Source of the DNA: Eutreptiella sp. 'Long Island Sound 2002'
Lineage: Eukaryota; Protista; Euglenida
Assembly: GCA_964036045.1 (NCBI GenBank)
Contig: OZ038378.1
Span: 166,284,001-166,348,000 of the forward strand
DNA: 64,000 nucleotides
Direction: 5' to 3'
Shown here: positions 5,979-53,565 of the stretch, piece by piece
Layout of the letters: each line of letters opens with the position of its first letter
How positions within the stretch are numbered: position 1 is the stretch's first letter
Position numbers and translations under genes: made by a program
Notes under the pieces: model-generated
What the model was told of the DNA's origin: nothing
The model's input: only the letters and a program-made list of their open reading frames with translations
The model's database searches: none

Positions 5979-5981
5979 TTC

Positions 5982-6038
<57 letters not shown>

Positions 6039-6171: not shown

Positions 6172-9100
6172 ATGGCACCAGCCCACGAGGATGCATGTCG
6201 GTGGGCAGACGCTGTTTTGCTGTCCAGGCAGTACGAAACAATTTCGACTGCCAAAAGAGAAGCCTATCGACGGAATTCTTTGTCACTAGAAGATCACAAG
6301 CACACTTGTGCCCGAGAAATATCCACAAGCCAAGCGCTGTGCAAGGCCATGGCTATCTTTTGGTGATGGAGAGGGCCACGCTTTCGGTTACCCAAGTCAG
6401 TGCAAACGTCGTTGACCTGGGCTATGAAATCAACTCTCTCCTTGGCACGTCTTTGATGGATGTGATTGGAGCAACAGCCTTCGACAACATCCAGACGACA
6501 ATTGACATTCAAGAGTCCAAGCCAATGAGCAGTTTCCCTGTGGAATTCGGTGTTGGAGAACACAGAAAAACACTTGCAAGCTCCTTCCATGTGCGTGGCA
6601 CAAGTGCGTTTCTTGAGCTGGAACCTTACGTACCAGTCACTTCAAGAGGTGTTGATGCTGGAAATGTGCAAGTCCGATGCATGAGTCAGAAGCTGTTAAC
6701 GGTCGAAAGCAGTGTCGAAGGTTGCCAGCTCTTGACACAAAGTGTTCAGAGCACAACGGGGTTTGACCGGGTAATGGTCTACATGTTTCACCCTGATCAA
6801 CACGGTGAAGTCATTGCGGAGACCCTTCGACCTGATTCTGGGGTGGAGAGCCTCAAGGGGCTGCACTTCCCGGCACATGATATTCCGGAGCAGGCCAGGG
6901 CTTGCTTCGTCCGCAACATCTACTCACACATCCCCCATGTGAAGCATGACGAAATCCCGCTTGTCCCAGTCGATTGTCCCCACAGCATGGAACGTCCGGA
7001 CATGACGCTGGTGAGCCTTCGATCCGTGGCCCCGGGGTGCACCCAATACTACCTCAACCTGGGTATTCAAGCATCCTTAGTGGTGTCTCTAGTGGTTGAT
7101 GGCCAATTGTGGGGCTTGCTGATCTGCCATCATATGTCGCCAAAATTCGTCCCATTCTATGAAAGGGTTGCAGCCGCAATGGTCAGTGAAGTCTTGTCCC
7201 TGTTCATCAGCGTACAGCAGCGGTTGGAACTTGCGCGGCAGCAGGAAAGCGCTGGGCGGGCGCAGCGAAGAATGGTTCACTGCCTGAAGGAGACCCATGA
7301 CCCGCAGGCAGCATTCGTCGGCGAAAACGGGAATGTTTCTGATCTATTAAAATGTACAGGGGCCTGCTGTGTGATCGATGGTGTGGTGCATCGATTTGGC
7401 GTCACCCCTACTGAAGAGGATATTCTTGAGTTAGTGAGTTTTGCCTTGGAGCACTCTGGTGGGGTGCTGTGTTCCACAAATCTTCCGGATGTCTACCCCA
7501 ACGCAGAGAAGTTCAGTGAGCATGCAAGGGGTTGCTTGCTGCAGAGCGCGTCCACCACAACGAAAGACCTCAAGGAAGGTAGCTTAGTTTGCATCTGGTT
7601 TCGGGGATCCATTACCCGAAATGTATATTGGGCAGGTGACCCTGCCAGCAGCTTCATCCCCGGGGGCATGGTCCCCCGCTCATCGTTCAGGCCGTTCAGT
7701 CAAACAGAAACGCTCTCTGCCGTGCCATGGACACGGAGCGACGAGCATATAGTCAGCAACTTCGTGCGTGACATCAGCCTGCAACTGGCCGAAATCAAGT
7801 GCCAGCAGGCAGAGCACCGCCTGAGGCGAATGCAGATGAAGGATCAATTCATCGCCAACATCTCCCATGAGATTCGCACCCCTCTTTATGCCATTAACGG
7901 CATGGCCGAGGAATGCATAGAGGCGCCGCACCTTCCCAGTGACCTTCAGGAGCCTGTGGAGTTGATCCATGCCAGTGGCACGTCGCTGCTCAGTCTTCTG
8001 AACGACATCATCGATGTAAAGAAGTTAGAAGATGGGAAGCTGCAATTGGTGCCCCAAGATGTCAACGTTGTGCAATTGGCGCGTTTCTGCCTGAAGATGT
8101 TCAGCAAGCAATTGAAGGCCAAGGGCCTGCTTGGGAAGCTGATCTACACCCCCTCCCTGGAGCATACAACTCTCAGTATCGACAAGACGCGGCTGCAGCA
8201 GCTGTACGTCAACCTCATCTCCAATGCACTCAAGTTCACAAACACAGGCTCGATTACTGTGCGGCTAACGCACAGCCAAAGCCCGTCCGAGCTGACAGTG
8301 TCTGTTGAAGACACCGGCATTGGCATCAAGGACAGCGACCTCCCCAAGCTCTTTGACAAGTTTGAGCAGGTCGACACCTCCGAAAAGCGGGTGTTTCACG
8401 GGGCAGGCCTGGGGCTGTACATCGTGAAGCAGATCCTGGACCTCATGAATGGCAAGCTGGGGGTCCAATCGGAGTGGCAGAAGGGCTGTCAGTTCTGGTT
8501 CAAGGTCTGTGCCCCCTGCAGCTGTGAAAGCAACACCGCTTGGGCATCCCAGGAGCCATGCGAGGAAGTCGTCATCAAGCCATCGCCATCCCAAGACATG
8601 GAAGCATCCCGGGCCTCAATAACTGCCTTGGTGTCTGGATCCGAAAGCACAAGGTCGACGGTTGCCTGGGCGTCTGCCTCGAGATCCAGCTCGGAGCCCT
8701 CCTCGCTTGCTCGACATTGTGCTGATCCTCCACCGTGCCTGGCCCTTAAGCCGCTACCTCTCACGCCGGTCCCCAGTCGGGCCCGGCCGAGTCCCAAATC
8801 TGCATTCAAGCGGATGTTCCGAGCGGTGTTTTCGACGCGCAGCTCCGATTCCTGTTCAACGCCCTCTTCGCCTTCCGAGACGCTGGTGCCCCAGGCTTCG
8901 ACACCAATCTCTCCCTCAGCCCCTTCCAACATGGGCATGCGGAAGAAGGCCAAGCAGAGGGCGGCACCGGAACCGCCACGTGCGTCGATTCCCATCCAAG
9001 TACGTTCAAGGGGAGGCTTACGCCGAAGAATCCTCGTGGCAGAAGACAACCCTGTGTTGCAGAAGGTCACCTTATCGATGCTGTCGCCCGTGGCAGATTG

Positions 9101-9428
9101 CGTCATCGTCCCGGATGGCGAAGACGTGCTGGAGAAGTTGGGCGAGTCCACGGCGTATGCATTGATATTGATGGATTTGCAGATGCCTCGTCTGGATGGT
9201 GTCGAGACCACGAAAGCCGTGCGAGCCATTCCGCAGTGTGACCACATCCCCATTGTTGGCTTCACTGCCAGTTCCATCCAGAGCGAGTTGGATGCATGCA
9301 AAGCGGCGGGAATGATTGAGGTGCTCTCCAAAAACCTCCCCAGGGCACAGTTGCAATCGTTCGTCTCCAGGTACACACAGCCGGCACCGCAATCAGATGC
9401 TGTGTCGGAGCTATCTTCCCCAGCTTGA
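6172..9428 (+). pseudogene. Phytochrome-type hybrid histidine kinase, copy 1, with a 1-nt deletion near codon 49 (pseudogene or sequencing error)
   Basis: Same domains as 45327-48584. It reads GAGAAAT (6314-6320) where copy 2 reads GAGAAAAT, so the frame from ATG 6172 stops at 6366. The remainder is open in another frame to 9428. Confidence 0.8.
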
Positions 9429-9775
9429 TCCAAGCATGGCATTGCGAAATGCCTTGTTACCCTATCTCAACCGCCCCACCCCTTCCCCCGCTCGTCAGAG
9501 CAAGGAAGGCCATGGAAGGCAGGTGGGCACACGTCGCTTCTTTGCAGCCCCCCTGTGGTATGCCAGAAGCGTATCTTTACCTGCCTTGCATCCAAATTCG
9601 TCACAGCCTCCCATCATGCAGCGTGCGCGCTGTCAAGAGTGCGCACTACTGCTCTGTGGGTATGCAGCTTGGTTCAAAAAGTGAGTGTTCTTCATGGTGA
9701 TGCTGAGACTCCATCAGTCTCTGATGGTCACCACCCACCCCTGCCTACCCTGACTGTCCACGCCACCTCCGTTTC

Positions 9776-10451: not shown

Positions 10452-11070
10452 GAAAAATTTAGATTAGGACAAGATTGATGTGGACGAACCTCCCTCGTAC
10501 CAAACATTTCCTTCAATTTTAAGGATGCTATGTGCCAAAATGTGTGCACCGGACACCGGCTGCAGGGGGGATTTTCTGCGTGCTACATGCAGTGTGACTG
10601 TGCAACGCAGAGATGAGACGGGGTGTCAACTGACACTGTGTTCTCTGTCGAGACTCACTCAAGACTGACAATGCTCGCATCAGAAGACCGTACAATTCAT
10701 GGATGTACCATGTTCTGTATGCACAAGCGGCGCGCGCGAGGTGTGTGTATTGGGGTGATTTCGTGCACCTACCCACGTATTTGACAGTGAAGTGCATGTG
10801 TTTCGAAGCCGTAAAAGGTATTACCATTGCACATACTGCACTACGTCCCCTTACAGTTTCACCCATGTCTCTTTCATGGTTTCCTACGGGCATCACTGTG
10901 TTCCTGCCACTATCACATCCGTCTCCGAGTGTGGGCAGTACATGAGCATCGAGTATATGGCACAGTACTGGCAGCGCGGCTGTGCAGGGATCGCGACCTA
11001 GCAGATACGGGTAGGATGCAATTGGCGCCGACCACACCGTCCGGCGCAGTGGCCGCGGACGCTCAAGAAT

Positions 11071-13699: not shown

Positions 13700-13960
13700 T
13701 GGGCCGTCTGGGTTAGCCCCTCGCCTCCCATCCAGGAACCATCCTATCCGCCACCATTAGACTACTCGCTGCAAGGCGCACCTAGACACTCCCCTACACC
13801 TCTCAAAACCTATAGTAGGGTCATCATGAAGATGCCAGGACACAATACCCTGGCCATCAACTGGTCCTGCGAAGCCGTGGTGCATACAATCCACTACAGG
13901 ACCCCATCCCAGGGCCCACAACCACATGCCCCCATGGACTACACTCCTTGAACCACTTGC
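13700..13960 (-). repeat. Downstream half of an older repeat; upstream half at ~21200-21530, intact copy at ~56365-56900
   Basis: The minus strand 'AAGCAAGTGGTTCAAGGAGTG...' matches 56630 onward. Confidence 0.8.
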
Positions 13961-16900
13961 TTATTTCTTTTCGACTAACTCCAAAAGTTCAAAGAGTACT
14001 CAAGACTGTGCTTGGGAAAGTGGGCGGCTCCAGCATGTGATACAGTGGATCCGCGCAGCGCGGAGCACATGGCAAAGACCCAGAGTTCACATGCGTATAC
14101 CAGAGGCCTCTTTGATGCGGTAGGCAAAAGCGCCACGCCATATGGCACGCCTATAACGCGTAAGAGTTAAGGGGGGAGAAAAGGCACGCTGGATCACGTG
14201 TGTGCCATTCCCCATAGGTCCTCAAGGGTGACAAGCTTTCGTAGCTTTGCAGGGGTATGTCCGGTGGCGGGCGTTGGCCCAGGATGCCGGGCCTTGTGCA
14301 GCACTGGCGTTTAGGCAGAGGCGACTTCACCCGGTGGGCGGCGCGCTGAGATGCCCACAACTGGCTCATCACCGAAAAGAGCTCAACCCTTCGGTTATGC
14401 TGCTGGTAGTGCCGGTCTGCAGAGGTGGTCCACACTCTAGCACGTCGCAGAAGGGAGTGCCGGTGCCATGATTGCCGCACTAGATCATCTAGCACGTCGC
14501 GGTATGAATCCAGCAGTGAGGCCCCGAGAACGGCCACTGATGCATAAACCAAGGCTGGGACAGATATTGCATCGCCGAGGCTACGTGCTGTGCCCCTGGG
14601 TCTGCGGCAGTGGAACAGAGGCACTGGTCGAGATATTTCACTGCCCATGATCTGGTGTGGTACGATGGCGGCCGATCCCATGTGCGCACCGCTCTGCGGT
14701 GGGATGCCTCTTGAGAGGCGCGGCCATCCCGCCGCGATGTTCTCTCCCAGGCCCCTGTATACCCTACTTGATTGCGGAGGACAGAGTCCGTGGGGTTCGG
14801 TCGTACGACTCGTTGGCGCAGCTCTGTGTACCACGCCGCCACCGCTGTGGACAGCATGGGCGGCACCTGTGGGTCGCGCGGGGGGCATGGTGAGTTGGCC
14901 GCGCAGCTGGCATCCACCATGTAGGGCGTGGTACTGGTGCCAGGCCACACGCTCCCTGGGGTCTACTCGCCATGCTCTTGGGATGTGGTCCCATAGCGAT
15001 TGTGGTATGTGAAGGCAGGAAACATGGTGTAGGTCCGCCGCCGACGCCGTGTTCCACCATTCAGTTACCAGAGCTTGCCACGGTCCCCCGGTGCTAAGCC
15101 ACATGTTGCGAAATGTGACTTTTGCAACGCATGCAGTGTATGAGGCGTTCGTGAACAGTGGTATCGTGATGGAGCGGACATAGGGGGCATCTGGGGGTGG
15201 TATTGGCCCACGGCGCGCCCGTCCCATCCCATTGTACCTGGCCCCGGGGCCATTTAACCCAGAGCATACGTCGGTCCCACGCATTGGCAGCCATGATACC
15301 GAGTGCGCACCGCCAAAAGTGACAACACACCTCCGCCAGAGGATCCATTTCCGCGCCGCAGTGGTGGTGGGCCCGCCGCGTATTGCAATATCTTCGGGGC
15401 GTCCGGGATGGTAATCCAGCACGGGTAGGCACGTGGCCATCTTGGCGAGCAGGTCTACTTCTCCATTACGCCGAATTTGTTCGTTTTCTTGCGCGTTGCG
15501 CGCCTCTGTCTGAAGGCGGTGGCTGGCGATCCACTCCGCGGCGACGCGTTTGTGTTGCACCTGGTCGCACACTTTGTGGTGGATGTTGGCGTCGGAACAT
15601 TCGTGCATGGGTCGGCGGTGAGCGCATTTTTTGACGGCCATGTTGTTGATATATTGAGTGTCACCGTCGGATGCCATGGCTGCTCCAATGGCTGCTCCGT
15701 ACATTTCAGCCCTGTAGGACTGCCATAGGCCCGCCACCCGGGCAAGGATGCGAAGAGGCCCTGTTGTCACTGCTGCGCCTGCCGCCCAGTATTCCGAGCC
15801 CGCAATCTCAAGTGTTGGCGGTTGCTGGTTTGAGTAGCACGGTATGCCTGCGATGGTGACAGGGTGGTATCCCGCGGAACCTTGCCCGCCAAGGGGTCTT
15901 CGTGGTACCGGTGTGGGGCAATGTGGTGGCGTGTGTGGAGGGCATCCCCCACCTGTTCTTTGTAGGCTGACAGGAGGACGCCGTCATGGGAGCTTTCGCT
16001 GTCGATGAGGCCGCGCGCCCCGGCCCGCCGCGGCGGAAGTGCTATGTGAAGTGCGGTGCGAGCACCCAGCTGGGCGAGTATAGCCAGGTAGTTGCAGATA
16101 GGCACCGCTGGGGAGGGTAGTTCTTTGTTGAGGTCGCAGCCAATGGATCCCGGACGTGAGCGTAACGTGTTCTGTACCATTGTGATGAATCATGCCATGT
16201 GGGCCAAGAAAAGCTGGTGCAACCCCATTTCGCCCGGGCGGTGAGGGGAAGTGACATGAAGGACGTTGTATGATTTGTGAACGTCAACCTTTTTGAGTTC
16301 CATACCCTCCGCCATAAGCATGAACCGCAAGCACATGGTGTCCATGGCTTTGAACATGGAGTCGTTGGGGAGAAACAAGGTGCGATATGTCCACTGTGGG
16401 ATCAAGACGTTGTTCAGCAGCTGTACCAGCTCGTAAGCGTTCAGCGGCAGGTATTAGTGTCGCGCCAGATCAGCGGCTATCACGTGCCTTTTGTTCCCAG
16501 GTCGCATGTGCCAGGTGGTGACCAAGGTAGTGGAAGATAGGGGGCTGCAGCGGCAGTTGCGCATCACCCCACGTGAGGGTGTCCCTGGTTGGGGACTCTC
16601 TTCGCGCCACACCTTGACGGCAGGAGGTGGAGCCCAACGGTAAACTTGTGTCTTTGAAGGCTTCGTCTTGAGGCCCAGTATGGCAGACAACTGACTGACA
16701 CGCTCCAGGACGCGTTGCATCTCACGTTGGTTCGGGGAAATGATGGCAATGTCTTCAACATAGGCCAGTATGGTGCTGTTGGGGAAGGAAGTAAGCACTC
16801 ATACACCAAAACAAAAAGGGCTGGGGACAGGGGGCACCCCTCCTTGATGCCACGGTGCACCGGAAAAAGGACGTCTCCATACACCCCCGTGCTGTGTGCA

Positions 16901-37069: not shown

Positions 37070-37700
37070 TGATCCCCCCACACACCTCCAGCATTTGCCA
37101 TTTGCTAGCACCATTTGTCTCAGCCCATTTTACATGGCACAAAGAACACGTCTATGATTGCTCATCCCTACTTGTTCCATGTCATGCAACACACCGCTTT
37201 GAGACTGGAAGGCGGGTTCAAAGCGAATGCCTGCGACCAGTTTTGAGCAATTGGCTCTTCATTGGCATGCATCGGTAACACCACCAGATGCATGCAAGCC
37301 ATGTTGTGGCACGGCATGGCTTGGGAGGGTGGCATCCCATGGCCAATGTCAACATTCCGCTGCTGTGGCTGTACAATAGTTGTTTGTCAATGGCCAATTG
37401 CACCAGCAAGTTCTGGACTCCGCCTTGCTTTACTGCCTCCATTGTCCTATGACAATCTGAGAAGCCGCTGCCGGTGATCCGTTGCGCTTTACGCTTGGAT
37501 GCATCTCCTGCCCAACATCAATCGGACCAGTCGCAATCGCAATCGTTGGCACTTTGATCAATGGCCAATTGCACCAGCAAGTTCTGGACTCCACCCTGCT
37601 TTAATGCCTCCAATGCCTCCATTGGCCCGTGTCAATCCAAGGTGTCAATCTACGGAGCCACTGATAGTAATCTGTTGTGCTTTACGCTTGGATGCATCAC
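37070..37700. repeat. Dispersed copy of the ~500-bp palindrome-rich satellite unit
   Basis: GATTGCTCATCCCTACTTG...GCAAGTTCTGGACTCC from 37156 matches the units at 49590-52180. Confidence 0.9.
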
Positions 37701-38480: not shown

Positions 38481-39134
38481 AATTGGCCTTTGCCCTCTAT
38501 AAAATTGCCCCCATCCCCCCCACACACACCTCCAGCATTCGCCATTTGCTGGTACTATTATCTCAGCCCATTTTGCATGGCACAAAGAACATGTCTATGA
38601 TTGCTTATCCACCCCCTCCCCCAACCCCATTGTCCTGCCCCACCCCTTGTCCTTCCCCAGGGGGGGGTGGAGGACCGTCACTTGGTCAACAAAATTTTTT
38701 TGTTGCAGCTCACTGTGTGGTTGTGTGGGTGACTGTGTTGTGAGGCACTGCCACTTGTATCCTTTGGCCTCTTGGCAGGAAATTTTGCTCACTTTCGCTG
38801 AAATGGAACTTGACCGCACAACCATGTTTACCCCTGGGACGAATGTAATGTTCATCCGCTCCACAGGGGAAACTGTTTTGATGCAGGTCGTGTGGAGTCG
38901 TTGGATGTTCAGAGCACGGTGATGCATATCGCCCCATCTCTTATGAGCGTGCTGCCACTGCATTCTTTCGTTTTGCAGTGCAATTTCTGTGCGTGAAAAT
39001 GTGCATGTATGGTGGTAGTGCGGTTCAGGTGCGGTTCAGAGCGGGAGGTGGGGGACCGTCACTTGGCAACCGTCCCCCAGGGGTTGGCGGGGGATGGTCT
39101 TCCCTCGGGTGGGCCCGGACAGGGGGGGGGGTGT

Positions 39135-41400
39135 ACGTGTTCCATGTCATGCAACACACCGCTTTGAGACTGGAAGGCGGGTTCAAAGCGAATGCCTGCG
39201 ACCAGTTTTGAGCAATTGGCTCTTCATTGGCATGCATCATAACACCACCAAATGCATGCAAGCCATGTTGTGGCACGGCATGGCTTGGGAGGGTGGCATC
39301 CCATGGCCAATGTCAACATGCCGCTGCTGTGGCTGGACAATAGTTGTTTGTCAATGGCCAATTGCACCAGCAAGTTCTGGACTCCGCCTTGCTTTACTGC
39401 CTCCATTGTCCTATGACAATCTGAGAAGCCGACGGTGAGCCGTGGCGCTTTCTGCTTGGATGCATCTCCTGCCCAACATCAATCGGACCAGTCGCAATCG
39501 CAATCGTTGGCACTTTGTCCTATGACAATCTGAGAAGCCACCCCCCCCCCCCCCCCCTCCCCCCACACACACCTCCAGCATTCGCCATTTGTTGGCACCA
39601 ATTATCTCCGCCCACAATCCAGTACTGACTGCTCCCCCCCTCCCCTTTGTCCCGTGAGGGTGCTGCCCGCGGATTGCACAGAGTGCACCAGGGCATGTGT
39701 GTTCGGCTGCATCCGTGAGCACGGATGCGCATGTGTGCCGCAAGTCACCACGTGATGATGATGATAAGTTGTCACAACTTGTCCATGGGCTGCTTCCCCA
39801 TTCTTTATCCACAAATTGATTGGTTTGAAATGGGGTTTAGCTGTATCAAAGGCGTTTGAAACTATTTACAATAATTGATAGCGGACCTGGAGCTGGGTTT
39901 GAGAAATGCCTGGGTGGATGTGGGTTGAACATAGTAGACCTGTTTTTGTGTTTTGAATGGGTGAGGCCCCCCAATTGGTGGACTAATGGTGTGTCAAAAG
40001 CCGGGTTGTCAACCTGACCCGGGGGCACAGAGTTTCTGTGCCCTAACTGGTGAGCGAAAATTGTGTCAAGGTCCTACATGGGCCGAGCAACCACCACGTG
40101 GGTCCCCAAGGGTGGTGCAATACCCTGATTGTTACCAAATAATCACCCAAATCCATCTCAAATGAGATACAAGGGTTGCAGAAAAAATCCAAAATTCGCA
40201 AATTTTTACATCCACTAAACGGCCTAAACAACACCAATTCTAGGGCTTTCGGGACCGCTCTGCTCAAGAACTGCCCCCTGGTTCCGCGGTCGAATTTTCC
40301 ACATCACCTTTTTTTGCCAGGGTAATGGGTTTTTCATGGTTCTGGTGGATGTGGGACAGCTATTCAGGTGTGCAGGACAACATTTCATGTGTGTTGCTAC
40401 TGGTCCTCCCATCAGGGGGGACCCTATCAGTCAGTCACAGTCGCACATACCCCTTAAACCCCTCCCCCCTGCTCTCGACCCCTTCCCCGAAGCAACCAGC
40501 CCCTGACAAGGAAACAAATAAAAGTCAGTTAAACACAGTTGAACATTAGATCCTTCCATGCACGTTGGAAGGCACACTACAGCCCAGTCAGCTGAGATTC
40601 AGTTCTTTGGTGTTCATTTGTCAGTGTGGTTAAGTGTGGGAAAGGAGAGGGTGCGCATGCTGTAGCGCAACGCGCCGGAACATTTTTTTTCCGCGGTACG
40701 GGGCTGCCCACGGTCATGCGCAAGAACCAACCCCTGGTTCCGCGGTCGAATTTTGGTGCGCATGAACCAACCCCTGGTTCCGCGGTCGAACATTGCCGGT
40801 TCCTGGACACGGGGGGGGGGGGGGGGCTTACCCCCATCTTGTAATCTCCCCCCCTTGCAATCCCCCCTGCCCCCCGGAGGGGGGAACGTCACTTTGACAT
40901 TTCTTCTGGAAACGGTTGGTTGTACTATGCTCTCCTGGAGGTGGTATGGGCGAAGGCTGCCCATGGGGTTTGGGGTGAGGGTCATGTGTTGGATGGAAAG
41001 TTGTACCTTACACGTGACATCTGCAAGCATGACCAGCTTTCCGATCAACTGAAGGTGCCTGTCAAGTCCAAGCCAGCCAAGCCAGCCACCAAAAGGGCTG
41101 GACACCAAGCTGCACAGCCTACCTCGTCTTCCAATCCTCAGCCTATCCCTGAATTGCCCACTGAGCATGTCCAGGAGTTTAAGGCTGTTTGGAGTCTAAA
41201 AAAGAAGTTTCGCACAGTGCCTGTGGAAAGGGCATGCACACAGAAGTAACATCATGGTTCAATGTGATTCACACTACCAGTGTTGTGCATGCACAGCTGC
41301 AGATTTGAAGTGTTACAGTTTGGTGGTGCAATCCCCCCGCCCCCCCTGGGGGGGCAACCTTCACTACATGGGGGGAGGGGGGTTGCAAGGGGGGTCCTGG
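39135..41400. repeat. Block duplicated at ~51905-53360 (satellite unit plus flanking sequence); this copy has extra sequence at ~40075-40825
   Basis: Colinear matches, e.g. CACGTGATGATGATGATAAGTTGTC (39751/52395) and GAAGGTGCCTGTCAAGTCC (41050/52998). Confidence 0.85.
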
Positions 41401-42266: not shown

Positions 42267-43379
42267 CCTTTTCCAGTGTTGTGCCCGCTCCTTCCTTTTT
42301 GTTTTGATCCTTGGCGGCGGCGGTTGCGCATTGTTGGCTCTTCTATCACAAATGTCACGCTCCTTTTTGATGAATTCGTGCTTGATGAGCGGGTACCCCC
42401 TTGATGTGTGGCTCCTTTGGCTCTTTGAGGATCGGTGTGATTTTGAGCTTCTTGTGCTTCTTGAAATTTTGGAACTTCTCGATGTGTTGCTCCCCGAGGA
42501 CTTCCTTGATTTTGTGCTTGCACTTGAAGTACCCGTATTGCGGCGTCCTCACGGCGTTCCCCCGTTTTTGCGTGGATTGCATTGGTTCAAGTTGCACTTT
42601 TCTAAAACAAACACACACACGCATGTGACAATATGACATTTCTTAGATTCTGCAACTGTGTCATGTTGTACACACAAGTTGCGTGTTCTCAATGGAACAA
42701 AAATACAATTGTGTGTTGTTGAGGGTGGCAACCAATGCGCTCGCTGTTCATGGCTCTTCCAGTTGTGCATGATGTGTGTTATGTGAAGGGAAGGTAGTTT
42801 GCATCTTTCTTGAGCTTGGGCAGTTTGGGTCACCTAATTCTAAGGGCGTTTCCAAGTGGTGTGCCTGGGGGCTCTTCGGGGGGAACATAGTCTAAAAGTA
42901 GCACGCAGTGCGCGCGCAGTGCAAGGATTCCCCCATCTAGGATAGATTTCAATGACAGACGGTCATAGGGAGTGGAGAAGGAGAAATTGGTACGCAGGTA
43001 ATCAGCCGGACACCGATAAAGGACCAAAGGATGTGAAGGGGTCGGGTACAGAGCACGTGTGACGGTGAAGGTGTCCTTCCACCACCCTGTTTAAACTGCC
43101 TTTTCACCTATGATGGGCCGTCCAAAGAGAGGCAACGGCATTACACACCACAAGTGAGCTAGAAAGGGCACTGCTTAAAGAGAGGAAGTGCACTGGAGGA
43201 GGATGATGCTGATTCCAATCAGGGAGGATCTAAGATGTGCAAGCCCATACATGCGGGTGTGCGTTGATGACCCGGTAGCACCAATGCAGGGCGTGGCACC
43301 CGTGAGTGCTCATCTCTTGAGAAGTGCAGCTTCATCATCGGCATGCCTTGGTTCATGGAAACACTACAGTGGTGCTATG

Positions 43380-44666
43380 CACGAATATCCGCGGATGGAG
43401 TCGCCTACCAGGGACGCCGTCACGTGGGGCGATGCGCGATTGCCGCTGCAGCCCCCGATCTTCCACTACCTTGGTCACCTTCCGGCACATCCAACCTGGG
43501 AACAAAATGCACGTGATGACTTCGTTGGGACGGCCGCTGTTGATCTAGCGCGATATCAATACCTGCCACTGAACGCTTTCGAGCGGGTGCCGTTGCTAAA
43601 CACCAGCCTGATCCCACGGTGGACGTATCGCACCTTGTTTCTCCCCAACGACTCCATGTTCAAAGCCATGGACTCGCCTGGCACGGGTGCCACGCCCTAC
43701 ATGGCGCATGCCAACTGCGCGGCCAACTCACCATGCCCCCCCCCCCCCCCGCGACCCACAGGTGCCGCCCACGCCGTCCACAGCGATGCCGGCATGGTAC
43801 ACGAGGCTGCCCACGAGCCGTACGACCGAACCCCACGGACTCCGTCCTCCGCAATCAAGTAGGGTATACAGGGGCCTGGGAGAGAACATCGCGGCGGGAT
43901 GGCCGCGCCTCTCAAGAGGCATCCCACCGCAGAGCGGTGCGCACATGGGATCGGCCGCCATCGTACCACACCAGATCATGGGCGGTGAAATATCTCGACC
44001 AGTGCCTCTGTTCCACTGCTGCGGACCCAGGGGCACAGTAGGTAGCCTCGGCGATGCAGTATTTGTCCCAGCCTTGGTTTATGCATCAGCGTGCTGTTCT
44101 CGGGGCCTCACTGCTGGATTCATAGCGCGGCGTGCTAGATGATCTAGTGCGGCAATCATGGCACTGGCACTCCCTTCTGCGACGTGCTAGAGTGTGGACC
44201 ACCTCTGCAGACCGGCACTACCAGCAGCATAACCGAAGGGTTGAGCTCTTTTCAGTGATGAGCCAGTTGTGGGCATCTGAGCGCGCCGCCCACCGGGTGA
44301 AGTCGCCTCTGCCTAAACGCCAGTGCCGCACAAGGCCCGGCATCCTGGGCCAACGCCCGCCACCGGACATGGCCCCGGCAAAGCGACGAAAGCTTGTCAC
44401 CCTTGAGGATCTGTGGGGAATGGCACACACGTGATCCAGCATGTTCTTTCTCCCCCCTAAACTCTTACGCATTATAGGCTTCCCATATGACGTGGCGGTT
44501 TTGCCTACCGCATCAGAGAGCCCTCTGGTATACACATGTGAACTCTGGGTCTTTGCCATGTGCCCCGCGTTGCGGGGATCCACTGCATCATATGCTGGAG
44601 TCGCCCACTTTCCCAAGCATAGTCTTGAGTACTCTTTGAACTTCCGAAGTCAGTAAAAAAAAAAAA
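43380..44666 (+). mobile_element. 5'-truncated, internally deleted LINE insertion with poly(A) tail and 23-bp TSD
   Basis: TSD GGAAACACTACAGTGGTGCTATG at 43357-43379 and 44667-44689, with A12 at 44655-44666. The site is empty in copy 1 (~5408). The sequence matches the reverse complement of the 13961-19250 LINE. Confidence 0.95.
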
Positions 44667-45125
44667 GGAAACACTACAGTGGTGCTATGTGTGTTCCCGT
44701 ATCAAATCGTTGAGTTTCTAGCCAATTGTGCCTGGGTATCCTCTGGCAATCACAGTCCACATGTATTGTGCCATGTGGCGCATCCCTTACCGGGGTAGCC
44801 CGGTGATTGCCCAAGCTTCGCAAACCGGGGAGAGGGTGAGCGCATCAACTGTCCTGACGTTGTAACACAACAATGAGTTGATCCAAAATCATAGGAAAAA
44901 GGGGAAGACAGCAGTGGGACTATCCCAAGAGAGAGTCCGCTCTAACCGATTGACCACTGCGCACGAAAGCATTTGAGCCTGGCAATGGGAACGCACACTG
45001 AACGTATGGTTTGTTGCAGCTGTAGCATACAGTCGGAGCTAGGAGTTGCAGCTCACAGTTTGTGCAAGAGTTGGATGGTGATTGTGGTCCACATTGGAAC
45101 AAGGCTGTAGGACATATGCATACCG

Positions 45126-45127
<2 letters not shown>

Positions 45128-45182
<55 letters not shown>

Positions 45183-45326
45183 TCCACTTTTTTCCTTCTT
45201 CGATTGGAAAAATTGTTTTCTACACTGTGAGTGGTTCTCAACAGCCCAATCTGGTCTACCGGTGGAACGTGGAAGCAACAGAAATATTCTTGTGGCTCTC
45301 GTGTGGTTTCAGGTTCTTCCAAGGCC
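45128..45326 (+). promoter_or_regulatory. (CT)n polypyrimidine tract and candidate trans-splice acceptors upstream of phytochrome copy 2
   Basis: (CT)n run at 45128-45200, then TTTCAG and CCAAG before GCCATGG (ATG 45327). Confidence 0.6.
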
Positions 45327-48300
45327 ATGGCACCAGCCCACGAGGATGCATGTCGGTGGGCAGACGCTGTTTTGCTGTCCAGGCAGTACGAAACAATTTC
45401 GACTGCCAAAAGAGAAGCCTATCGACGGAATTCTTTGTCACTAGAAGATCACAAGCACACTTGTGCCCGAGAAAATATCCACAAGCCAAGCGCTGTGCAA
45501 GGCCATGGCTATCTTTTGGTGATGGAGAGGGCCACGCTTTCGGTTACCCAAGTCAGTGCAAACGTCGTTGACCTGGGCTATGAAATCAACTCTCTCCTTG
45601 GCACGTCTTTGATGGATGTGATTGGAGCAACAGCCTTCGACAACATCCAGACGACAATTGACATTCAAGAGTCCAAGCCAATGAGCAGTTTCCCTGTGGA
45701 ATTCGGTGTTGGAGAACACAGAAAAACGTTTGCAAGCTCCTTCCATGTGCGTGGCACAAGTGCGTTTCTTGAGCTGGAACCTTACGTACCAGTCACTTCA
45801 AGAGGTGTTGATGCTGGAAATGTGCAAGTCCGATGCATGAGTCAGAAGCTGTTAACGGTCGAAAGCAGTGTCGAAGGTTGCCAGCTCTTGACACAAAGTG
45901 TTCAGAGCACAACGGGGTTTGACCGGGTAATGGTCTACATGTTTCACCCTGATCAACACGGTGAAGTCATTGCGGAGACCCTTCGACCTGATTCTGGGGT
46001 GGAGAGCCTCAAGGGGCTGCACTTCCCGGCACATGATATTCCGGAGCAGGCCAGGGCTTGCTTCGTCCGCAACATCTACTCACACATCCCCCATGTGAAG
46101 CATGACGAAATCCCGCTTGTCCCAGTCGATTGTCCCCACAGCATGGAACGTCCGGACATGACGCTGGTGAGCCTTCGATCCGTGGCCCCGGGGTGCACCC
46201 AATACTACCTCAACCTGGGTATTCAAGCATCCTTAGTGGTGTCTCTAGTGGTTGATGGCCAATTGTGGGGCTTGCTGATCTGCCATCATATGTCGCCAAA
46301 ATTTGTCCCATTCTATGAAAGGGTTGCAGCCGCAATGGTCAGTGAAGTCTTGTCCCTGTTCATCAGCGTACAGCAGCGGTTGGAACTTGCACGGCAGCAG
46401 GAAAGCGCTGGACGGGCGCAGCGAAGAATGGTTCACTGCCTGAAGGAGACCCATGACCCGCAGGCAGCATTCGCCGGCGAAAACGGGAATGTTTCTGATC
46501 TATTAAAATGTACAGGGGCCTGCTGTGTGATCGATGGTGTGGTGCATCGATTTGGCGTCACCCCTACTGATGAGGAGATTCTTGAGTTAGTGAGTTTTGC
46601 CTTGGAGCACTCTGGTGGGGTGCTGTGTTCCACAAATCTTCCGGATGTCTACCCCAACGCAGAGAAGTTCAGTGAGCATGCAAGGGGTTGCTTGCTGCAG
46701 AGTGCGTCCACCACAACGAAAGACCTCAAGGAAGGTAGCTTAGTTTGCATCTGGTTTCGGGGATACATTACCCGAAATGTATATTGGGCAGGTGACCCTG
46801 CCAGCAGCTTCATCCCCGGGGGCATGGTCCCCCGCTCATCGTTCAGGCCGTTCAGTCAAACAGAAACGCTCTCTGCCATGCCATGGACACAGAGCGACGA
46901 GCATATAGTCAGCAACTTCGTGCGTGACATCAACCTGCAACTGGCCGAAATCAAGTGCCAGCAGGCGGAGCACCGCCTGAGGCAAATGCAGATGAAGGAT
47001 CAATTCATCGCCAACATCTCCCATGAGATTCGCACCCCTCTTTATGCCATTAACGGCATGGCCGAGGAATGCATAGAGGCGCCGCACCTTCCCAGTGACC
47101 TTCAGGAGCCTGTGGAGTTGATCCATGCCAGTGGCACGTCGCTGCTCAGTCTTCTGAATGACATCATCGATGTAAAGAAGTTAGAAGATGGGAAGCTGCA
47201 ATTGGTGCCCCAAGATGTCAACGTTGTGCAATTGGCACGTTTCTGCCTGAAGATGTTCAGCAAGCAATTGAAGGCCAAGGGCCTGCTTGGGAAGCTGATC
47301 TACACCCCCTCCCTGGAGCATACAACTCTCAGTATCGACAAGACGCGGCTGCAGCAGCTGTACGTCAACCTCATCTCCAATGCACTCAAGTTCACAAACA
47401 CAGGCTCGATTACTGTGCGGCTAACGCACAGCCAAAGCCCGTCCGAGCTGACAGTGTCTGTTGAAGACACCGGCATTGGCATCAAGGACAGCGACCTCCC
47501 CAAGCTCTTTGACAAGTTTGAGCAGGTCGACACCTCCGATAAGCGGGTGTTTCACGGGGCAGGCCTGGGGCTGTACATCGTGAAGCAGATCCTGGACCTC
47601 ATGAATGGCAAGCTGGGGGTCCAATCGGAGTGGCAGAAGGGCTGTCAGTTCTGGTTCAAGGTCTGTGCCCCCTGCAGCTGTGAAAGCAACACCGCTTGGG
47701 CATCCCAGGAGCCATGCGAGGAAGTCGTCATCAAGCCCTCGCCATCCCAAGACATGGAAGCATCCCGGGCCTCAACAACTGCCTTGGTGTCTGGATCCGA
47801 AAGCACAAGGTCGACGGTTGCCTGGGCGTCTGCCTCGAGATCCAGCTCGGAGCCCTCCTCGCTTGCTCGACATTGTGCTGATCCTCCACCGCGCCTGGCC
47901 CTTAAGCCGCTACCTCTCACGCCGGTCCCCAGTCGGGCCCGGCCGAGTCCCAAATCTGCATTCAAGCGGATGTTCCGAGCGGTGTTTTCGACGCGCAGCT
48001 CCGATTCCTGTTCAACGCCCTCTTCGCCTTCCGAGACGCCGGTGCCCCAGGCTTCGACACCAATCTCTCCCTCAGCCCCTTCCAACATGGGCATGCGGAA
48101 GAAGGCCAAGCAGAGGGCGGCACCGGAACCGCCACGTGCGTCGATTCCCATCCAAGTACGTTCAAGGGGAGGCTTACGCCGAAGAATCCTCGTGGCAGAA
48201 GACAACCCTGTGTTGCAGAAGGTCACCTTATCGATGCTGTCGCCCGTGGCAGATTGCGTCATCGTCCCGGATGGCGAAGACGTGCTGGAGAAGTTGGGCG

Positions 48301-48584
48301 AGTCCACGGCGTATGCATTGATATTGATGGATTTGCAGATGCCTCGTCTGGATGGTGTCGAGACCACGAAAGCCGTGCGAGCCATTCCGCAGTGTGACCA
48401 CATCCCCATTGTTGGCTTCACTGCCAGTTCCATCCAGAGCGAGTTGGAGACATGCAAAGCGGCGGGAATGATTGAGGTGCTCTCCAAAAACCTCCCCAGG
48501 GCACAGTTGCAATCGTTCGTCTCCAGGTACACACAGCCGGCACCGCAATCAGATGCTGTGTCGGAGCTATCTTCCCCAGCTTGA
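45327..48584 (+). CDS. Phytochrome-type hybrid sensor histidine kinase (PAS-GAF-PHY-HisKA-HATPase-REC), 1085 aa, intronless
   Basis: Photosensory core: 'TCARENIHKPSAVQGHG' (Cys46), 'TGFDRVMVYMF..DQHGEVIAE', 'GLHFPAHDIPEQAR', 'LWGLLICHH', 'WAGDP', 'PRSSF'. HisKA 'ISHEIRTPL'; N box 'NLISNALKFT'; G1 'EDTGIGI'; G2 'GAGLGLYI'. REC 'VAEDN..ILMDLQMP.LDG..FTA..K'. Confidence 0.95.
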   Translation: MAPAHEDACRWADAVLLSRQYETISTAKREAYRRNSLSLEDHKHTCARENIHKPSAVQGHGYLLVMERATLSVTQVSANVVDLGYEINSLLGTSLMDVIGATAFDNIQTTIDIQESKPMSSFPVEFGVGEHRKTFASSFHVRGTSAFLELEPYVPVTSRGVDAGNVQVRCMSQKLLTVESSVEGCQLLTQSVQSTTGFDRVMVYMFHPDQHGEVIAETLRPDSGVESLKGLHFPAHDIPEQARACFVRNIYSHIPHVKHDEIPLVPVDCPHSMERPDMTLVSLRSVAPGCTQYYLNLGIQASLVVSLVVDGQLWGLLICHHMSPKFVPFYERVAAAMVSEVLSLFISVQQRLELARQQESAGRAQRRMVHCLKETHDPQAAFAGENGNVSDLLKCTGACCVIDGVVHRFGVTPTDEEILELVSFALEHSGGVLCSTNLPDVYPNAEKFSEHARGCLLQSASTTTKDLKEGSLVCIWFRGYITRNVYWAGDPASSFIPGGMVPRSSFRPFSQTETLSAMPWTQSDEHIVSNFVRDINLQLAEIKCQQAEHRLRQMQMKDQFIANISHEIRTPLYAINGMAEECIEAPHLPSDLQEPVELIHASGTSLLSLLNDIIDVKKLEDGKLQLVPQDVNVVQLARFCLKMFSKQLKAKGLLGKLIYTPSLEHTTLSIDKTRLQQLYVNLISNALKFTNTGSITVRLTHSQSPSELTVSVEDTGIGIKDSDLPKLFDKFEQVDTSDKRVFHGAGLGLYIVKQILDLMNGKLGVQSEWQKGCQFWFKVCAPCSCESNTAWASQEPCEEVVIKPSPSQDMEASRASTTALVSGSESTRSTVAWASASRSSSEPSSLARHCADPPPRLALKPLPLTPVPSRARPSPKSAFKRMFRAVFSTRSSDSCSTPSSPSETPVPQASTPISPSAPSNMGMRKKAKQRAAPEPPRASIPIQVRSRGGLRRRILVAEDNPVLQKVTLSMLSPVADCVIVPDGEDVLEKLGESTAYALILMDLQMPRLDGVETTKAVRAIPQCDHIPIVGFTASSIQSELETCKAAGMIEVLSKNLPRAQLQSFVSRYTQPAPQSDAVSELSSPA

Positions 48585-49589
48585 TCCAAGCATGGCATTG
48601 CGAAATGCCTTGTTACCCTATCTCACCCGCCCCACCCCTTCCCCCGCTCGTCAGAGCAAGGAAGGCCATGGAAGGCAGGTGGGCACACGTCGCTTCTTTG
48701 CAGCCCCCCTGTGGTATGCCAGAAGCGTATCTTTACCTGCCTTGCATCCAAATTCGTCACAGCCTCCCATCATGCAGCGTGCGCGCTGTCAAGAGTGCGC
48801 ACTACTGCTCTGTGGGTATGCAGCTTGGTTCAAAAAGTGAGTGTTCTTCATGGTGATGCTGAGACTCCATCAGTCTCTGATGGTCACCACCCACCCCTGC
48901 CTACCCTGACTGTCCACGCCACCTCCGTTTCTGTCTGATCACTCTGTCTTCACACCTGCTGAACGACTGGGATCCTACTGCATTTGATGATACCTTCCAG
49001 GGAAAAATTTAGATTAGGACAAGATTGATGTGGACGAACCTCCCTCGTACCAAACATTTCCTTCAATTTTAAGGATGCTATGTGCCAAAATGTGTGCACC
49101 GGACACCGGCTGCAGGGGGGATTTTCTGCGTGCTACATGCAGTGTGACTGTGCAACGCAGAGATGAGACGGGCTGTCAACTGACACTGTGTTCTCTGTCG
49201 AGACTCACTCAAGACTGACAATGCTCGCATCAGAAGACCGTACAATTCATGGATGTACCATGTTCTGTATGCACAAGCGGCGCGCACGAGGTGTGTGTAT
49301 TGGGGTGATTTCGTGCACCTACCCACGTATTTGACAGTGAAGTGCATGTGTTTCGAAGCTGTAAAAGGTATTACCATTGCACATACTGCACTACGTCCCC
49401 TTACAGTTTCACCCATGTCTCTTTCATGGCTTCCTACGGGCATCACTGTCACCTACATCCGATCAAATGGTGATAGGGTGCCTGCCACTGTCACCAAGAA
49501 ACAAAGGAACGACTTTTCCCCATAGTTTATTCGGGCAAGTAATCCCCAGATAAGAGTGCTCTTTTACATAGCGCAAAAAACTGGTCCCT

Positions 49590-52180
49590 GATTGCTCATC
49601 CCTACTTGTTGCATGTCATGCAACACACCACTTTGAGACTGGAAGGCGGGTTCAAAGCGAATGCCTGCGACCAGTTTTGAGCAATTGGCTCTTCATTGGC
49701 ATGCATCGGTAACACCACCAGATGCATGCAAGCCATGTTGTGGCACGGCATGGCTTGGGAGGGTGGCATCCCATGGCCAATGTCAACATGCCACTGCCGT
49801 GGCTGTACAATAGTTAGTTGTCAATGGCCAATTGCACCAGCAAGTTCTGGACTCCGCCCTGCTTTACTGCCTCCATTGTTCCCTGCCAATCCAATCCAAC
49901 CCGTCAATCTAGGGAGCCACTGACAGTATTCCGTTGTGCTTTACGCTTAGATGCATCTCCTGCCCAACACCAATCGGACCAGTCGCAATCGCAATCGTCG
50001 GCACTTTGATGTGTCCGCTGTCCGACGCCCCCCCCTCTCGCCCCACACACACCTCCAGCATTCGCCATTTGCTGGCACCAATTATCTCATCCCAGCAAGT
50101 TCTGGACTCCGCCCTGCTTTACTGCCTCCATTGTTCCCTGCCAATCCAAGGTGTCAATCTAGGGAGCCACTGACAGTATTCCGTTGTGCTTTACGCTTGG
50201 ATGCATCTCCTGCCCAACACCAATCGGACCAGTCGCAATCCCAATCATTGGCACTTTGATGTGTCCACTGTCCGACGCCCCCCCCCCCTCGCCCCACACA
50301 CACCTCCAGCATTCGCCATTTGCTGGCACCAATTATCTCAGCCCATTTTACATGGCACAAAGAACATGTCCATGATTGCTCATCCCTACTTGTTGCATGT
50401 CATGCAACACACGGCTTTGAGACTGGAAGGCGGGTTCAAAGCGAATGCCTGCGACCAGTTTTGAGCAATTGGCTCTTCATTGGCATGCATCGGTAACACC
50501 ACCAGATGCATGCAAGCCATGTTGTGGCACGGCATGGCTTGGGAGGGTGGCATCCCATGGCCAATGTCAACATGCCACTGCCGTGGCTGTAGAATAGTTA
50601 GTTGTCAATGGCCAATTGCACCAGCAAGTTCTGGACTCCGCCCTGCCTCCATTGTCCTATGACAATCTGAGAAGCCACTGCCGGTGGGCCGTGCTGCTTT
50701 ATTATTGGATGCATCTCCTGCCCAACACCAATCGGACCAGTCGCAATCGCAATCATTGGCACTTTGATGTGTCCACTGTCCGACACCCCCCCCTCTCCCC
50801 CCACACACACCTCCAGCATTCGCCATTTGCTGACACCAATTATCTCAGCCCATTTTACATGGCACAAAGAACACGTCTATGATTGCTCATCCCTACTTGT
50901 TCCATGTCATGCAACACACCGCTTTGAGACTGGAAGGCGGGTTCAAAGCGAATGCCTGCGACCAGTTTTGAGCAATTGGCTCTTCATTGGCATGCATCGG
51001 TAACACCACCAGATGCATGCAAGCCATGTTGTGGCACGGCATGGCTTGGGAGGGTGGCATCCCATGGCCAACGTCAACATGCCGCTATGGCCAATTGCAC
51101 CAGCAAGTTCTGGACTCCGCCCTGCTTTACTGCCTCCATTGTTCCCTGCCAATCCAAGGTGTCAATCTAGGGAGCCACTGACAGTATTCCGTTGTGGTTT
51201 ACGCTTGGATGCATCTCCTGCCCAACACCAATCGGACCAGTCGCAATCGCAATCATTGGCACTTTGATGTGTCCACTGTCCGACACCCCCCCCTCTCCCC
51301 CCACACACACCTCCAGCATTCGCCATTTGCTGGCACCAATTATCTCAGCCCATTTTACATGGCACAAAGAACACGTCTATGATTGCTCATCCCTACTTGT
51401 TGCATGTCATGCAACACACCGCTTTGAGACTGGAAGGCGGGTTCAAAGCGAATGCCTGCGACCAGTTTTGAGCAATTGGCTCTTCATTGGCATGCATCGG
51501 TAACACCACCAGATGCATGCAAGCCATGTTGTGGCACGGCATGGCTTGGGAGGGTGGCATCCCATGGCCAATGTCAACATGCCGCTGCTGTGGCTGTAGA
51601 ATAGTTAGTTGTCAATGGCCAATTGCACCAGCAAGTTCTGGACTCCGCCCTGCCTCCATTGTCCTATGACAATCTGAGAAGCCACTGCCGGTAAGCCGTG
51701 CCGCTTTACGCTTGGATGCATCTCCTGCCCAACACCAATCGGACCAGTCGCAATCGCAATCGTTGGCACTTTGATGTGTCCGCTGTCCGACACCCCCCCC
51801 TCTCCCCCCACACACACCTCCAGCATTCGCCATTTGCTGGTACCAATTATCTCAGCCCATTTTACATGGCACAAAGAACATGTCCATGATTGCTCATCCC
51901 TACTTGTTGCATGTCATGCAACACACGGCTTTGAGACTGGAAGGCGGGTTCAAAGCGAATGCCTGCGACCAGTTTTGAGCAATTGGCTCTTCATTGGCAT
52001 GCATCGGTAACACCACCAGATGCATGCAAGCCATGTTGTGGCACGGCATGGCTTGGGAGGGTGGCATCCCATGGCCAATGTCAACATGCCACTGCCGTGG
52101 CTGTACAATCAATGGCCAATTGCACCAGCAAGTTCTGGACTCCGCCCTGCTTTACTGCCTTCATTGTCCTATGTCAATCT
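49590..52180. repeat. Tandem array of a ~500-bp palindrome-rich unit (5 units)
   Basis: Units start with GATTGCTCATCCC at 49590, 50374, 50881, 51381 and 51888 (periods 784, 507, 500, 507; the first has an internal partial duplication). Confidence 0.95.
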
Positions 52181-53565
52181 GAGAACCCACCCCACCCCCC
52201 CGGGCAACACACACATCTCCAGCATTCACCATTTGTCGGCACCAATTATCCCCGCCCACGATCCAGTACTAACCCCTCCCTCCCTCCCCTTTGTCCCGTG
52301 AGGGTGCTGCCTGCGCATTGCACAGTAGGCACCAGAGCATGTGTGTTCACCTCCATCCGTGAGAACGGATGCGCATGTGTGCCGCAAGTCACCACGTGAT
52401 GATGATGATAAGTTGTCACAACTTGTCCATGGGCTGCTTCCCCATTCTTTATCCACAAATTCATTGGTTCGAAACTGGGTTTAGCTGTATCAAAGGCGGT
52501 TGAGACTATTTACAATAATTGATAGCGGACCTGGAGCTGGGTTTGAGAAATGCCTGGGTGGATGTGGGTTGAACATAGTAAACCTGTTTTTGTGTTTTGA
52601 ATGGGTGAGGCCCCCCAATTGGTGGACTAATGGTGAGCAGGCTACGCCAGCTCATCTTTGTCTGAGCCAAAAAAAAATTGGTGGACTAATGGTGTGTCAA
52701 CAGCCGGGTTGTCAACCTAACCCGGGGGCACATGGTTTCTGTGCCCTAACTGGTGAGCGAAAATTGTGTGAAGGCACCTTACCCCCATCTCGTAATCCCC
52801 CCCCCCCCCTGTGCAATCCCCCCCACCCCCCGGAGGGGGGGAACGTCACTGTGACATTTCTTCTGGAAACGGTTGGTTGTACTATGCTCTCCTGGAGGTG
52901 GTATGGGCGAAGGCTGCCCATGGGGTTTGGGGACAGGGTCATGTGTTGGATGGAAAGTTGTACCTTACACGTGGCATTTGCAAGCATGACCAGCTTTCCG
53001 ATCAAATGAAGGTGCCTGTCAAGTCCAAGCCAGCCAAGCCAGCCACCAAAAGGGCTGGAAACCGAGCTGCACAGCCTATCTCGTCTTCCAATCCTCAGCC
53101 TAAACCTGAATTGCCCACTGAGCATGTCCAGGAGTTTAAGGCTGTTTGGAGTCTAAAAAAGAAGTTTCGCACAGTGCCTGTGGAAAGGGCACGCACACAG
53201 AAGTAACATCATGGTTCAATGTGATTCACACTACCAGTGTTGTGCATGCACAGCTGCAGATTTGAAGTGTTACAGTTTGGTGGTGCAATCCCCCCGCCCC
53301 CCCTGGGGGGCAACCTTCACTACATTGGGGAGGGGGATTACAAGGGGGGTTCCAGGGGCTAAACGAAGGCCTATTCACGGACTTGATCAACTCAGTCATC
53401 ACAGGAGCCGAACACGAGGGCAATGCGAAGACAGTATGCGAGGTCCTATGGGCAGTGCTCGTGCACATCTGTCCACAAACCGACATGGGAACAGATGTTA
53501 GCCCGCCGCCCATTAGCCCCAAGAGGGGTGGCGATGATGGCCCCTCACCCCCCGCACGGCAGCAC

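Follow-up and report, generated by a model that had tools for sequence, protein, structure and literature searches.

A 64,000-nt stretch of the genome of the euglenid Eutreptiella sp. 'Long Island Sound 2002' (contig OZ038378.1, positions 166,284,001 to 166,348,000; hereafter the window, with position 1 at its first letter) carries two nearly identical phytochrome genes whose GAF domain presents a cysteine, Cys290, where a histidine is conserved in related photoreceptors. Which position of the chromophore pocket does this cysteine occupy, and could it offer the bilin a second, colour-shifting bond? We approached both questions through the second gene copy, whose protein is called the query below. 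It is encoded by a single uninterrupted open reading frame of 1085 codons (45327-48584, forward strand, ATG at 45327) with the Pfam domain order PAS_2-GAF-PHY-HisKA-HATPase_c-Response_reg, all domains scoring above cut-offs, and with intact kinase motifs (Table 1) and receiver Asp motif. Its photosensory module unites the three Pfam domains and the phytochrome fold that define a knotted PAS-GAF-PHY unit, and in a phmmer search against all PDB chains the best matches to this module are bacteriophytochromes (BphPs; E = 3e-66). Judged from its sequence, the product is a bacteriophytochrome-type sensor kinase of a euglenid with a fused receiver and, on the grounds developed here, a good candidate for a colour-shifted sensor.

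Position 260 in the query and its paralogs

In phmmer alignments to solved BphPs some 25 residues to each side of the cysteine motif are free of gaps, the query's 'apgC' lying opposite 'sptH' (PDB 4r70), 'spvH' (4s21 and 4r6l) and 'spiH' (8u4x). These alignments bear out two claims of a preliminary description of this DNA, namely that Cys290 replaces the conserved GAF histidine, at the column of His260 (Cph1 numbering, used for all positions below), and that Gly289 occupies the canonical GAF-Cys site. The motif itself, LRSVAPGCTQYYLNLG at 46173-46220, recurs identically at 7017-7064. When the query and 263 retrieved proteins are aligned with MAFFT (264 sequences), the position-260 column holds His in 239 sequences, Cys in 16, Tyr in five, and Asn, Ser and Phe in one each. 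Eight of the 16 Cys260 sequences are cyanobacterial, carry a 'PCC' motif and represent the type known as tandem-cysteine cyanobacterial phytochromes (TCCPs); one of them, P0013, aligns in register and without gaps to FiDCB (PDB 9jry), and since the GAF-Cys of FiDCB is Cys259, the cysteine pair of P0013 is 259-260, its Cys260 sharing the MAFFT column of query Cys290. Furthermore, the strict TCCP signature, given in PMC11880981 as Cys260, His264, Leu/Ile/Met272, Val274 and Ser288, maps to query columns 290, 294, 302, 304 and 318, and is found in the eight TCCP-type sequences apart from Ala288 in two of them and Tyr264 together with Ser272 in P0082. With the gapless BphP alignments, the FiDCB numbering and the signature columns in agreement, the assignment of Cys290 to position 260 and of Gly289 to the GAF-Cys position 259 is secure.

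An AlphaFold2 model of residues 40-541 (mean pLDDT 93.2, pTM 0.90) has a short helix at its residues 249-257 (protein residues 288-296) that holds both Cys290 and, four residues further on, Tyr294, and the best Foldseek matches are Pr-state BphP modules (PsBphP 8u4x, TM 0.84; DrBphP, 0.83), with Cph1 at 0.82. Two other placements were considered and rejected: Cys290 as a canonical GAF-Cys shifted by one residue is ruled out by the gapless alignments to four solved BphPs and by the TCCP and FiDCB numbering, and Cys290 as the primary A-ring attachment site is ruled out by the presence of Cys46 in a proper knot motif and by the C10-reactive character of position 260 in TCCPs.

Relatives of the query were sought by a word-index search and by an exhaustive search of 1.84 billion cluster representatives. 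Close relatives, at 40-98% identity, were found only in ENA assembly ERZ25074135 (P0001-P0007, P0017 and P0121-P0123; the contigs of P0002, P0003, P0006, P0121 and P0122 were checked directly), giving a family of 12 members from one genome, and the next matches after it come from bacteria, at 33-35% identity. A maximum-likelihood tree recovers the euglenid family as monophyletic (100/100), and its His260/Leu264 paralogs, P0006 and P0121, are sister to an eight-member clade (100/99) in which the query, P0002, P0003, P0007 and P0004 combine Cys260 with Tyr264. The survey of this column among euglenid homologs that the preliminary description had envisaged thus covers 12 paralogs of a single assembly, across which the cysteine is not uniform. 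The Cys260/Tyr264 pair appears to be the ancestral state of the eight-member clade, the simplest history consisting of one His-to-Cys and one Leu-to-Tyr change on the clade stem and three subsequent losses, and it has been retained along tree paths longer than 1.2 substitutions per site; the neighbouring position 259 is Glu in P0002 and Gly in the query. Between copy 2 and P0002 the ratio of nonsynonymous to synonymous substitution rates (dN/dS) comes to 0.34 for the gene as a whole and to 0.33 for its photosensory module, values by which the gene is under purifying selection. A literature search returned no paper on euglenid phytochromes, a single transcriptome study merely listing 'phytochrome' clusters of Euglena gracilis, and the family of at least 12 paralogs therefore appears to be undescribed. 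On the supply of bilin, a paper search for euglenid heme oxygenase or PCYA brought up nothing but a review of bacterial gene expression.

Co-variation, pocket residues and a candidate mechanism

Among 237 background sequences with His260, residue 264 is Leu in 216, Met in 19, and Thr and Ile in one each, and is never Tyr or His (0/237). Among the Cys260 sequences, by contrast, His264 is found in seven of the TCCP type, and Tyr264 in the euglenid clade, the TCCP-like P0082 and the bacterial P0250; the tree places at least four separate origins of Cys260, three of which carry Tyr or His at 264. Clade-defining substitutions number 23 over 501 positions for the euglenid Cys/Tyr clade and 12 for the TCCPs, and positions 257, 260 and 264 are common to both (hypergeometric p = 0.014 over all positions and 0.003 over conserved columns). 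Six of the 23 (257, 260, 261, 264, 265 and 267) are concentrated in the 11-residue helix 257-267.

Two of the retrieved bacterial bacteriophytochromes also combine a knot cysteine with Cys260 and have no GAF-Cys, so that the euglenid arrangement has independent bacterial counterparts: P0250 (L005:1772-3730), which reads Val-Cys, has Tyr264 and adjoins MarR- and DinB-type genes, and P0052, which reads Met-Cys and has Leu264 and an HWE kinase. Five further bacterial BphP representatives (P0135, P0153, P0174, P0184 and P0260) have Tyr260, in the motif M-Y-T-E/R-Y-L, together with the normal Leu264.

The rest of the pocket combines retained and altered residues, much as the preliminary description had read them. 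The N-terminal cysteine is kept: Cys46 sits within the knot motif H-T-C-A-R-E-N-I-H and aligns with the knot cysteine, a column that is Cys in 232 of the 237 background BphP-type sequences and in all family members having the N-terminus. PASDIP has indeed become PAHDIP; the stretch FVRNIYSHIPH holds both the Tyr216-to-Phe change, found in most family members and in copy 2, and the Arg222-to-Ser change; and DIP, CHH, WAGDP and PRSSF are all present. Further retained residues of the query are Tyr176, Phe203, Arg254, Tyr263 and Ser272, and Ser257 is replaced by Ala. Arg222 is invariant in the background (237/237) and is Ser, Thr or Gly in every member of the euglenid family, the His260 paralogs included, so that the propionate-binding site has changed family-wide. 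A second cysteine, Cys245 at position 215, is clade-specific, this position being Cys in none of the 237 background sequences (Leu in 95%) and in neither His260 paralog. In the DrBphP and Cph1 structures, the residues lost here are mainly propionate contacts, and those retained include the core photoswitching set. This division between retained and lost residues is the main argument that photosensing continues and, equally, that the mode of binding has changed.

With moderate confidence, and by analogy with the TCCPs, we propose that the query is a dual-Cys variant in which the knot cysteine anchors the bilin, Cys260, partnered by Tyr264, bonds reversibly to C10, and a GAF-Cys is dispensed with. 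That the protein binds a bilin, which bilin this is, the adduct at C10 and the colours are all inferred, as follows. The bilin, most likely biliverdin, would be anchored on Cys46, and the helix that normally presents His260 over the bilin B and C rings has been remodelled; Cys290, helped by Tyr294, would add reversibly to C10. The adduct would split the conjugated system and shift one photostate to near-UV, violet or blue wavelengths; light-driven 15Z/15E isomerisation would make and break the second bond, giving a red or far-red partner state; and the photostate would be read out via the intact histidine kinase and receiver.

There is direct precedent for such chemistry at this position. TCCPs and the tandem-cysteine eukaryotic phytochromes (TCEPs) of algae, glaucophytes among them, independently gained an extra GAF-domain cysteine at the same place, and the second thioether linkage made by this cysteine in TCCPs yields violet or blue dark states and blue-violet/yellow-orange photocycles (PMC11880981), the linkage being made at the bilin C10 (PMC8707292). 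TCCP analogues were engineered through H290C in ToDCB and H260C in SyCph1 and ToCph1, and H260C was combined with a 259C change in DrBphP and ToBphP1; in dual-Cys bacteriophytochromes (DCBs), H260C or H290C produces violet/blue sensors, with biliverdin too (PMC11880981). The suggestion of a dual-Cys second linkage in the preliminary description accordingly gains a close parallel, in that His260-to-Cys is the very change that defines TCCPs and TCEPs, and the Leu264-to-Tyr change that goes with it echoes the TCCP signature His264.

Several observations weigh against this proposal. Three of the eight clade members have replaced Cys260, by Ser in P0017, Asn in P0005 and Phe in P0122, all three being short gene models; the bacterial P0052 carries Cys260 with Leu264; and, conditional on position 260, the shared changes at 257 and 264 reach only modest significance (p ~0.03-0.09, Poisson approximation). 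Only two of the five strict TCCP signature residues are exact in the query, Ser272 not being Leu, Ile or Met and Ile288 not being Ser, and Tyr264 is a chemically related replacement of the TCCP His264 rather than an exact match. The family is without Arg222 and mostly without Tyr216, Ser257 and Ser274, all propionate contacts, and bilin binding may be altered as a result. Cysteine changes alone mostly gave poor binding or incomplete photocycles in DrBphP, ToBphP and Cph1, substitutions beyond the cysteines were concluded to be necessary, and a knot cysteine with Cys260 in the absence of Cys259 is not among the variants described in the available part of the source, the classification of which holds no class for this combination (PMC11880981).

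Some of the same evidence bears on a reading, in our view rather unlikely, in which Cys290 tunes the pocket without bonding. The query would then be a singly linked biliverdin phytochrome, in which removal of the His260 imidazole and its pyrrole-water contact would alter chromophore protonation and pKa and give a shifted, pH-sensitive or partly bleached red/far-red cycle. Substitutions of His260 in Cph1 do range in effect from loss of chromophorylation to near-normal Pfr in H260Q (PMC12420706), and engineered H260C BphPs and Cph1s are often mixtures or form the second linkage poorly (PMC11880981). The natural occurrence of Tyr260 in the five bacterial representatives and of Asn, Ser and Phe in euglenid paralogs means that the site tolerates residues unable to bond, and P0052 does without a Tyr/His264 partner. 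Bonding is favoured over tuning by the several independent lineages in which Cys260 goes with a Tyr or His264, by the concerted remodelling of the helix as in a known adduct-forming lineage, and by the location of the thiol, since the His260 site is where TCCPs reach C10.

The pocket residues also bear on whether light is sensed at all. We regard it as improbable that photosensing has been lost, which would leave a protein with poor or no bilin binding, a light-independent kinase and possibly a redox or thiol sensor acting via Cys245 and Cys290. Such a loss would fit the disappearance of the otherwise invariant Arg222 from the entire family, the changes at several propionate-contact positions, the second clade-specific cysteine at 215 and the short or truncated gene models of several paralogs. 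The knot cysteine, Asp207-Ile-Pro, Tyr176, Tyr263, Arg254, His290 and both tongue motifs are nevertheless retained, a set whose conservation would be unexpected in a protein for which bilin and tongue switch had become irrelevant; the photosensory module evolves at a dN/dS of 0.33; and the confident structural model has the Pr-state BphP fold. Since cysteine alone is insufficient in BphP and Cph1 scaffolds and Arg222 is lost, altered protonation and light independence both keep some probability beside the dual-Cys proposal.

Duplicated copies, transcription and surroundings

The two genes lie within segments 5655-9845 and 44805-49001, which are 99% identical over 4.2 kb and sit in repeat-rich surroundings. 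The preliminary description had given one GAF reading for both copies, which holds for that segment; the N-terminus that bears Cys46 is out of frame in copy 1. Directly after the Cys46 codon, copy 1 is short of one A in the A-run at 6316-6319 (45472-45475 in copy 2), reading GAGAAAT where copy 2 reads GAGAAAAT (6300-6330 and 45455-45480), and this 1-nt frameshift puts its codons 1-49 out of frame with the remainder. The gene-caller product of copy 1, P0001, begins in the alternative frame, which happens to give H-L-C-P-R-N-I-H, with a coincidental cysteine one residue nearer the I-H motif. Downstream of the frameshift the copies differ by nine synonymous and 15 nonsynonymous changes (dN/dS 0.52). 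Comparison with the contigs of DNA run X9 reported a 7-nt indel at 45262, which also separates the copies, and did not report the deletion, so that an assembly error at the copy 1 homopolymer is possible.

Contig comparison was carried out over 44805-49001 (4197 nt) with X1, a run labelled with an organism and probably of RNA (the RNA label being a guess), with the estuary metatranscriptomes X2 and X3, and with X9. Contigs of X1, X2 and X3 cover approximately 45420-49001, and codon 290 is spanned without differences by X1 record 2 (45834-46222) and X3 record 18 (45998-46222); the RNA runs leave 44805-45364 uncovered, and X9 covers every bin. No joints occur over the gene in RNA or DNA contigs, which points to an intronless gene. 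All three RNA runs also contain variant contigs with approximately 3-7% letter differences and a 3-nt deletion at 46798, the latter matching paralog P0002 (DP-SSF against DPASSF), which has Glu259-Cys260; it therefore seems that a second paralog with the cysteine is transcribed. The data fit an intronless gene and at least two transcribed paralogs that carry the cysteine, although contigs of this kind cannot prove transcript ends.

These observations also speak to whether the window copies are decaying duplicates, pseudogenes in which the cysteine is a neutral relic. The frameshift after codon 49 of copy 1, the 15 nonsynonymous against nine synonymous differences (dN/dS 0.52) and the repeat-rich locus would all be expected of decay, but we hold this to be very improbable: copy 2 is a complete 1085-codon reading frame with all catalytic motifs, contigs of the RNA libraries match it exactly, and the copy 1 deletion falls in a homopolymer and was not seen in the X9 contigs. 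Moreover, the cysteine is common to paralogs merely 46-50% identical and thus long predates the duplication.

Table 1. Coordinates of the phytochrome copies and of domains and pocket residues of the query (window positions; residues of copy 2; equivalents in Cph1 numbering)
Feature	Window position	Strand	Residues	Remarks
Copy 1	6172..9428	+		99% identity with copy 2; Cys290 codon, unchanged, at 7038-7040
PAS_2			46-152	Pfam
GAF			185-330	Pfam
PHY			363-528	Pfam
HisKA			556-622	Pfam
HATPase_c			671-779	Pfam
Response_reg			954-1063	Pfam
Knot cysteine	45462..45464	+	Cys46	TGT; PAS-knot N-terminal Cys of the biliverdin-attachment type
PAHDIP	46026..46043	+		Asp207-Ile-Pro retained; Ser206 replaced by His
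Cys-Phe pair	46059..46064	+	Cys245-Phe246	Leu215-Tyr216 equivalents; Cys245 codon at 46059-46061
Arg222 equivalent	46080..46082	+	Ser252	
Pocket helix	46185..46217	+	287-297	Cph1 257-267; A-P-G-C-T-Q-Y-Y-L-N-L
GAF-Cys259 site	46191-46193	+	Gly289	GGG
His260 site	46194-46196	+	Cys290	TGC
Leu264 equivalent	46206..46208	+	Tyr294	One helical turn past Cys290
Ser274 equivalent	46236..46238	+	Val304	Matches TCCP signature Val274
Cys-His-His	46281..46289	+		His290 and His291 (Cph1 numbering) retained
PHY tongue motifs	46785..46844	+		WAGDP and PRSSF retained
Kinase motifs	47019..47573	+		H-box SHEIRTP, N-box NALKFT, G1 DTGIGI and G2 GAGLGL intact

Upstream of copy 2, a (CT)n tract at 45122-45193 is followed by TTTCAG, with its AG at 45312-45313, 14 nt upstream of the ATG; the arrangement looks like the polypyrimidine tract and splice acceptor of spliced-leader trans-splicing. 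A Euglena gracilis spliced-leader pattern has no match in the window. A 317-residue antisense open reading frame (47645-48598, reverse strand) overlaps the region of the Ser/Pro-rich linker and the receiver, and is probably a by-product of biased composition rather than a gene. Tandem repeats of approximately 500 bp lie just downstream of copy 2 (49562-52190), with further copies at 37074-37558 and 39134-39617 (85-96% identity), and the phytochrome copies are flanked by additional repeated segments, namely 13960-14945 and 43676-44667 (inverted), 4972-5430 and 42935-43380, and 10382-10899 and 48932-49449. These flanking segments place the duplication in a larger, rearranged repeat landscape.

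The query among known bilin sensors

Like the query, canonical BphPs (DrBphP, Agp1, RpBphP2/3 and PsBphP) have a knot cysteine, no GAF-Cys and a histidine kinase as output, and they provide its best sequence and fold matches (TM 0.84), yet identity is only approximately 30-33%, and the query has Cys260, Tyr264, Ser222, Phe216, Ala257 and Val274 in place of their His, Leu, Arg, Tyr, Ser and Ser. TCCPs (NpTP1/NpTCCP, ToTCCP, FiTCCP and Le3CP) resemble it in the knotted PAS-GAF-PHY module, in Cys260 for His, in Val274 and in a protic aromatic residue at 264, which is His in TCCPs and Tyr in both the query and the TCCP-like P0082. They differ in anchoring phycocyanobilin via the GAF cysteine Cys259, where the query combines Gly259 with a knot cysteine, and the query, unlike them, is eukaryotic and has a fused receiver; in the tree, TCCP-type sequences group with cyanobacterial and bacterial ones, and the euglenid family forms its separate 100/100 clade.

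TCEPs are likewise eukaryotic, algal phytochromes with an extra cysteine at the same position, but they keep the GAF-Cys that the query is without, a comparison made with the description of TCEPs only (PMC11880981); one of them, CparGPS1, has a blue/far-red photocycle (PMC12420706). DCBs (FiDCB, 9jry) share the knot cysteine and a further pocket cysteine, which in their case is Cys259 and binds the A ring, whereas the second cysteine of the query is Cys260, next to a glycine at 259. The engineered '3CP' variants combine knot cysteine, GAF-Cys and tandem cysteine: with H260C, FiDCB and NcDCB are photoactive with both bilins, one of them showing a UV/far-red cycle with biliverdin, which shows that cycles of the TCCP type are possible with biliverdin on a scaffold that has the knot cysteine and Cys260 (PMC11880981). 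Finally, dual-Cys cyanobacteriochromes of the DXCF and insert-Cys types also rely on reversible thiol addition at C10 for blue or near-UV absorption (PMC7332365, PMC8707292), but they are GAF-only sensors, with the second cysteine in the DXCF motif or an inserted loop rather than at 260.

By its defining residues, then, the query is neither a TCCP nor a DCB nor a canonical BphP, and by analogy it plausibly works like a TCCP. More tentatively, and with some doubt, we suggest that it may represent a natural biliverdin dual-Cys phytochrome, anchored by the knot cysteine alone, cycling between near-UV/violet and far-red, and of an origin independent of, and additional to, those of the TCCPs and TCEPs. 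Second-Cys chemistry is the main known route by which bilin sensors reach the violet, blue and near-UV, and to our knowledge such chemistry at position 260 is documented only in combination with a canonical GAF-Cys and phycocyanobilin. If the proposal is true, the query would provide the first position-260 second linkage known on a BphP scaffold without a GAF-Cys, and Tyr or His264, arrived at convergently, would be the partner that enables it and that engineering attempts have been missing. It would also be a biliverdin-using violet/far-red switch, which would be of optogenetic interest since animal cells make biliverdin. It would show, too, that a distant eukaryote had come upon the same solution anew, with a scaffold of the biliverdin type.

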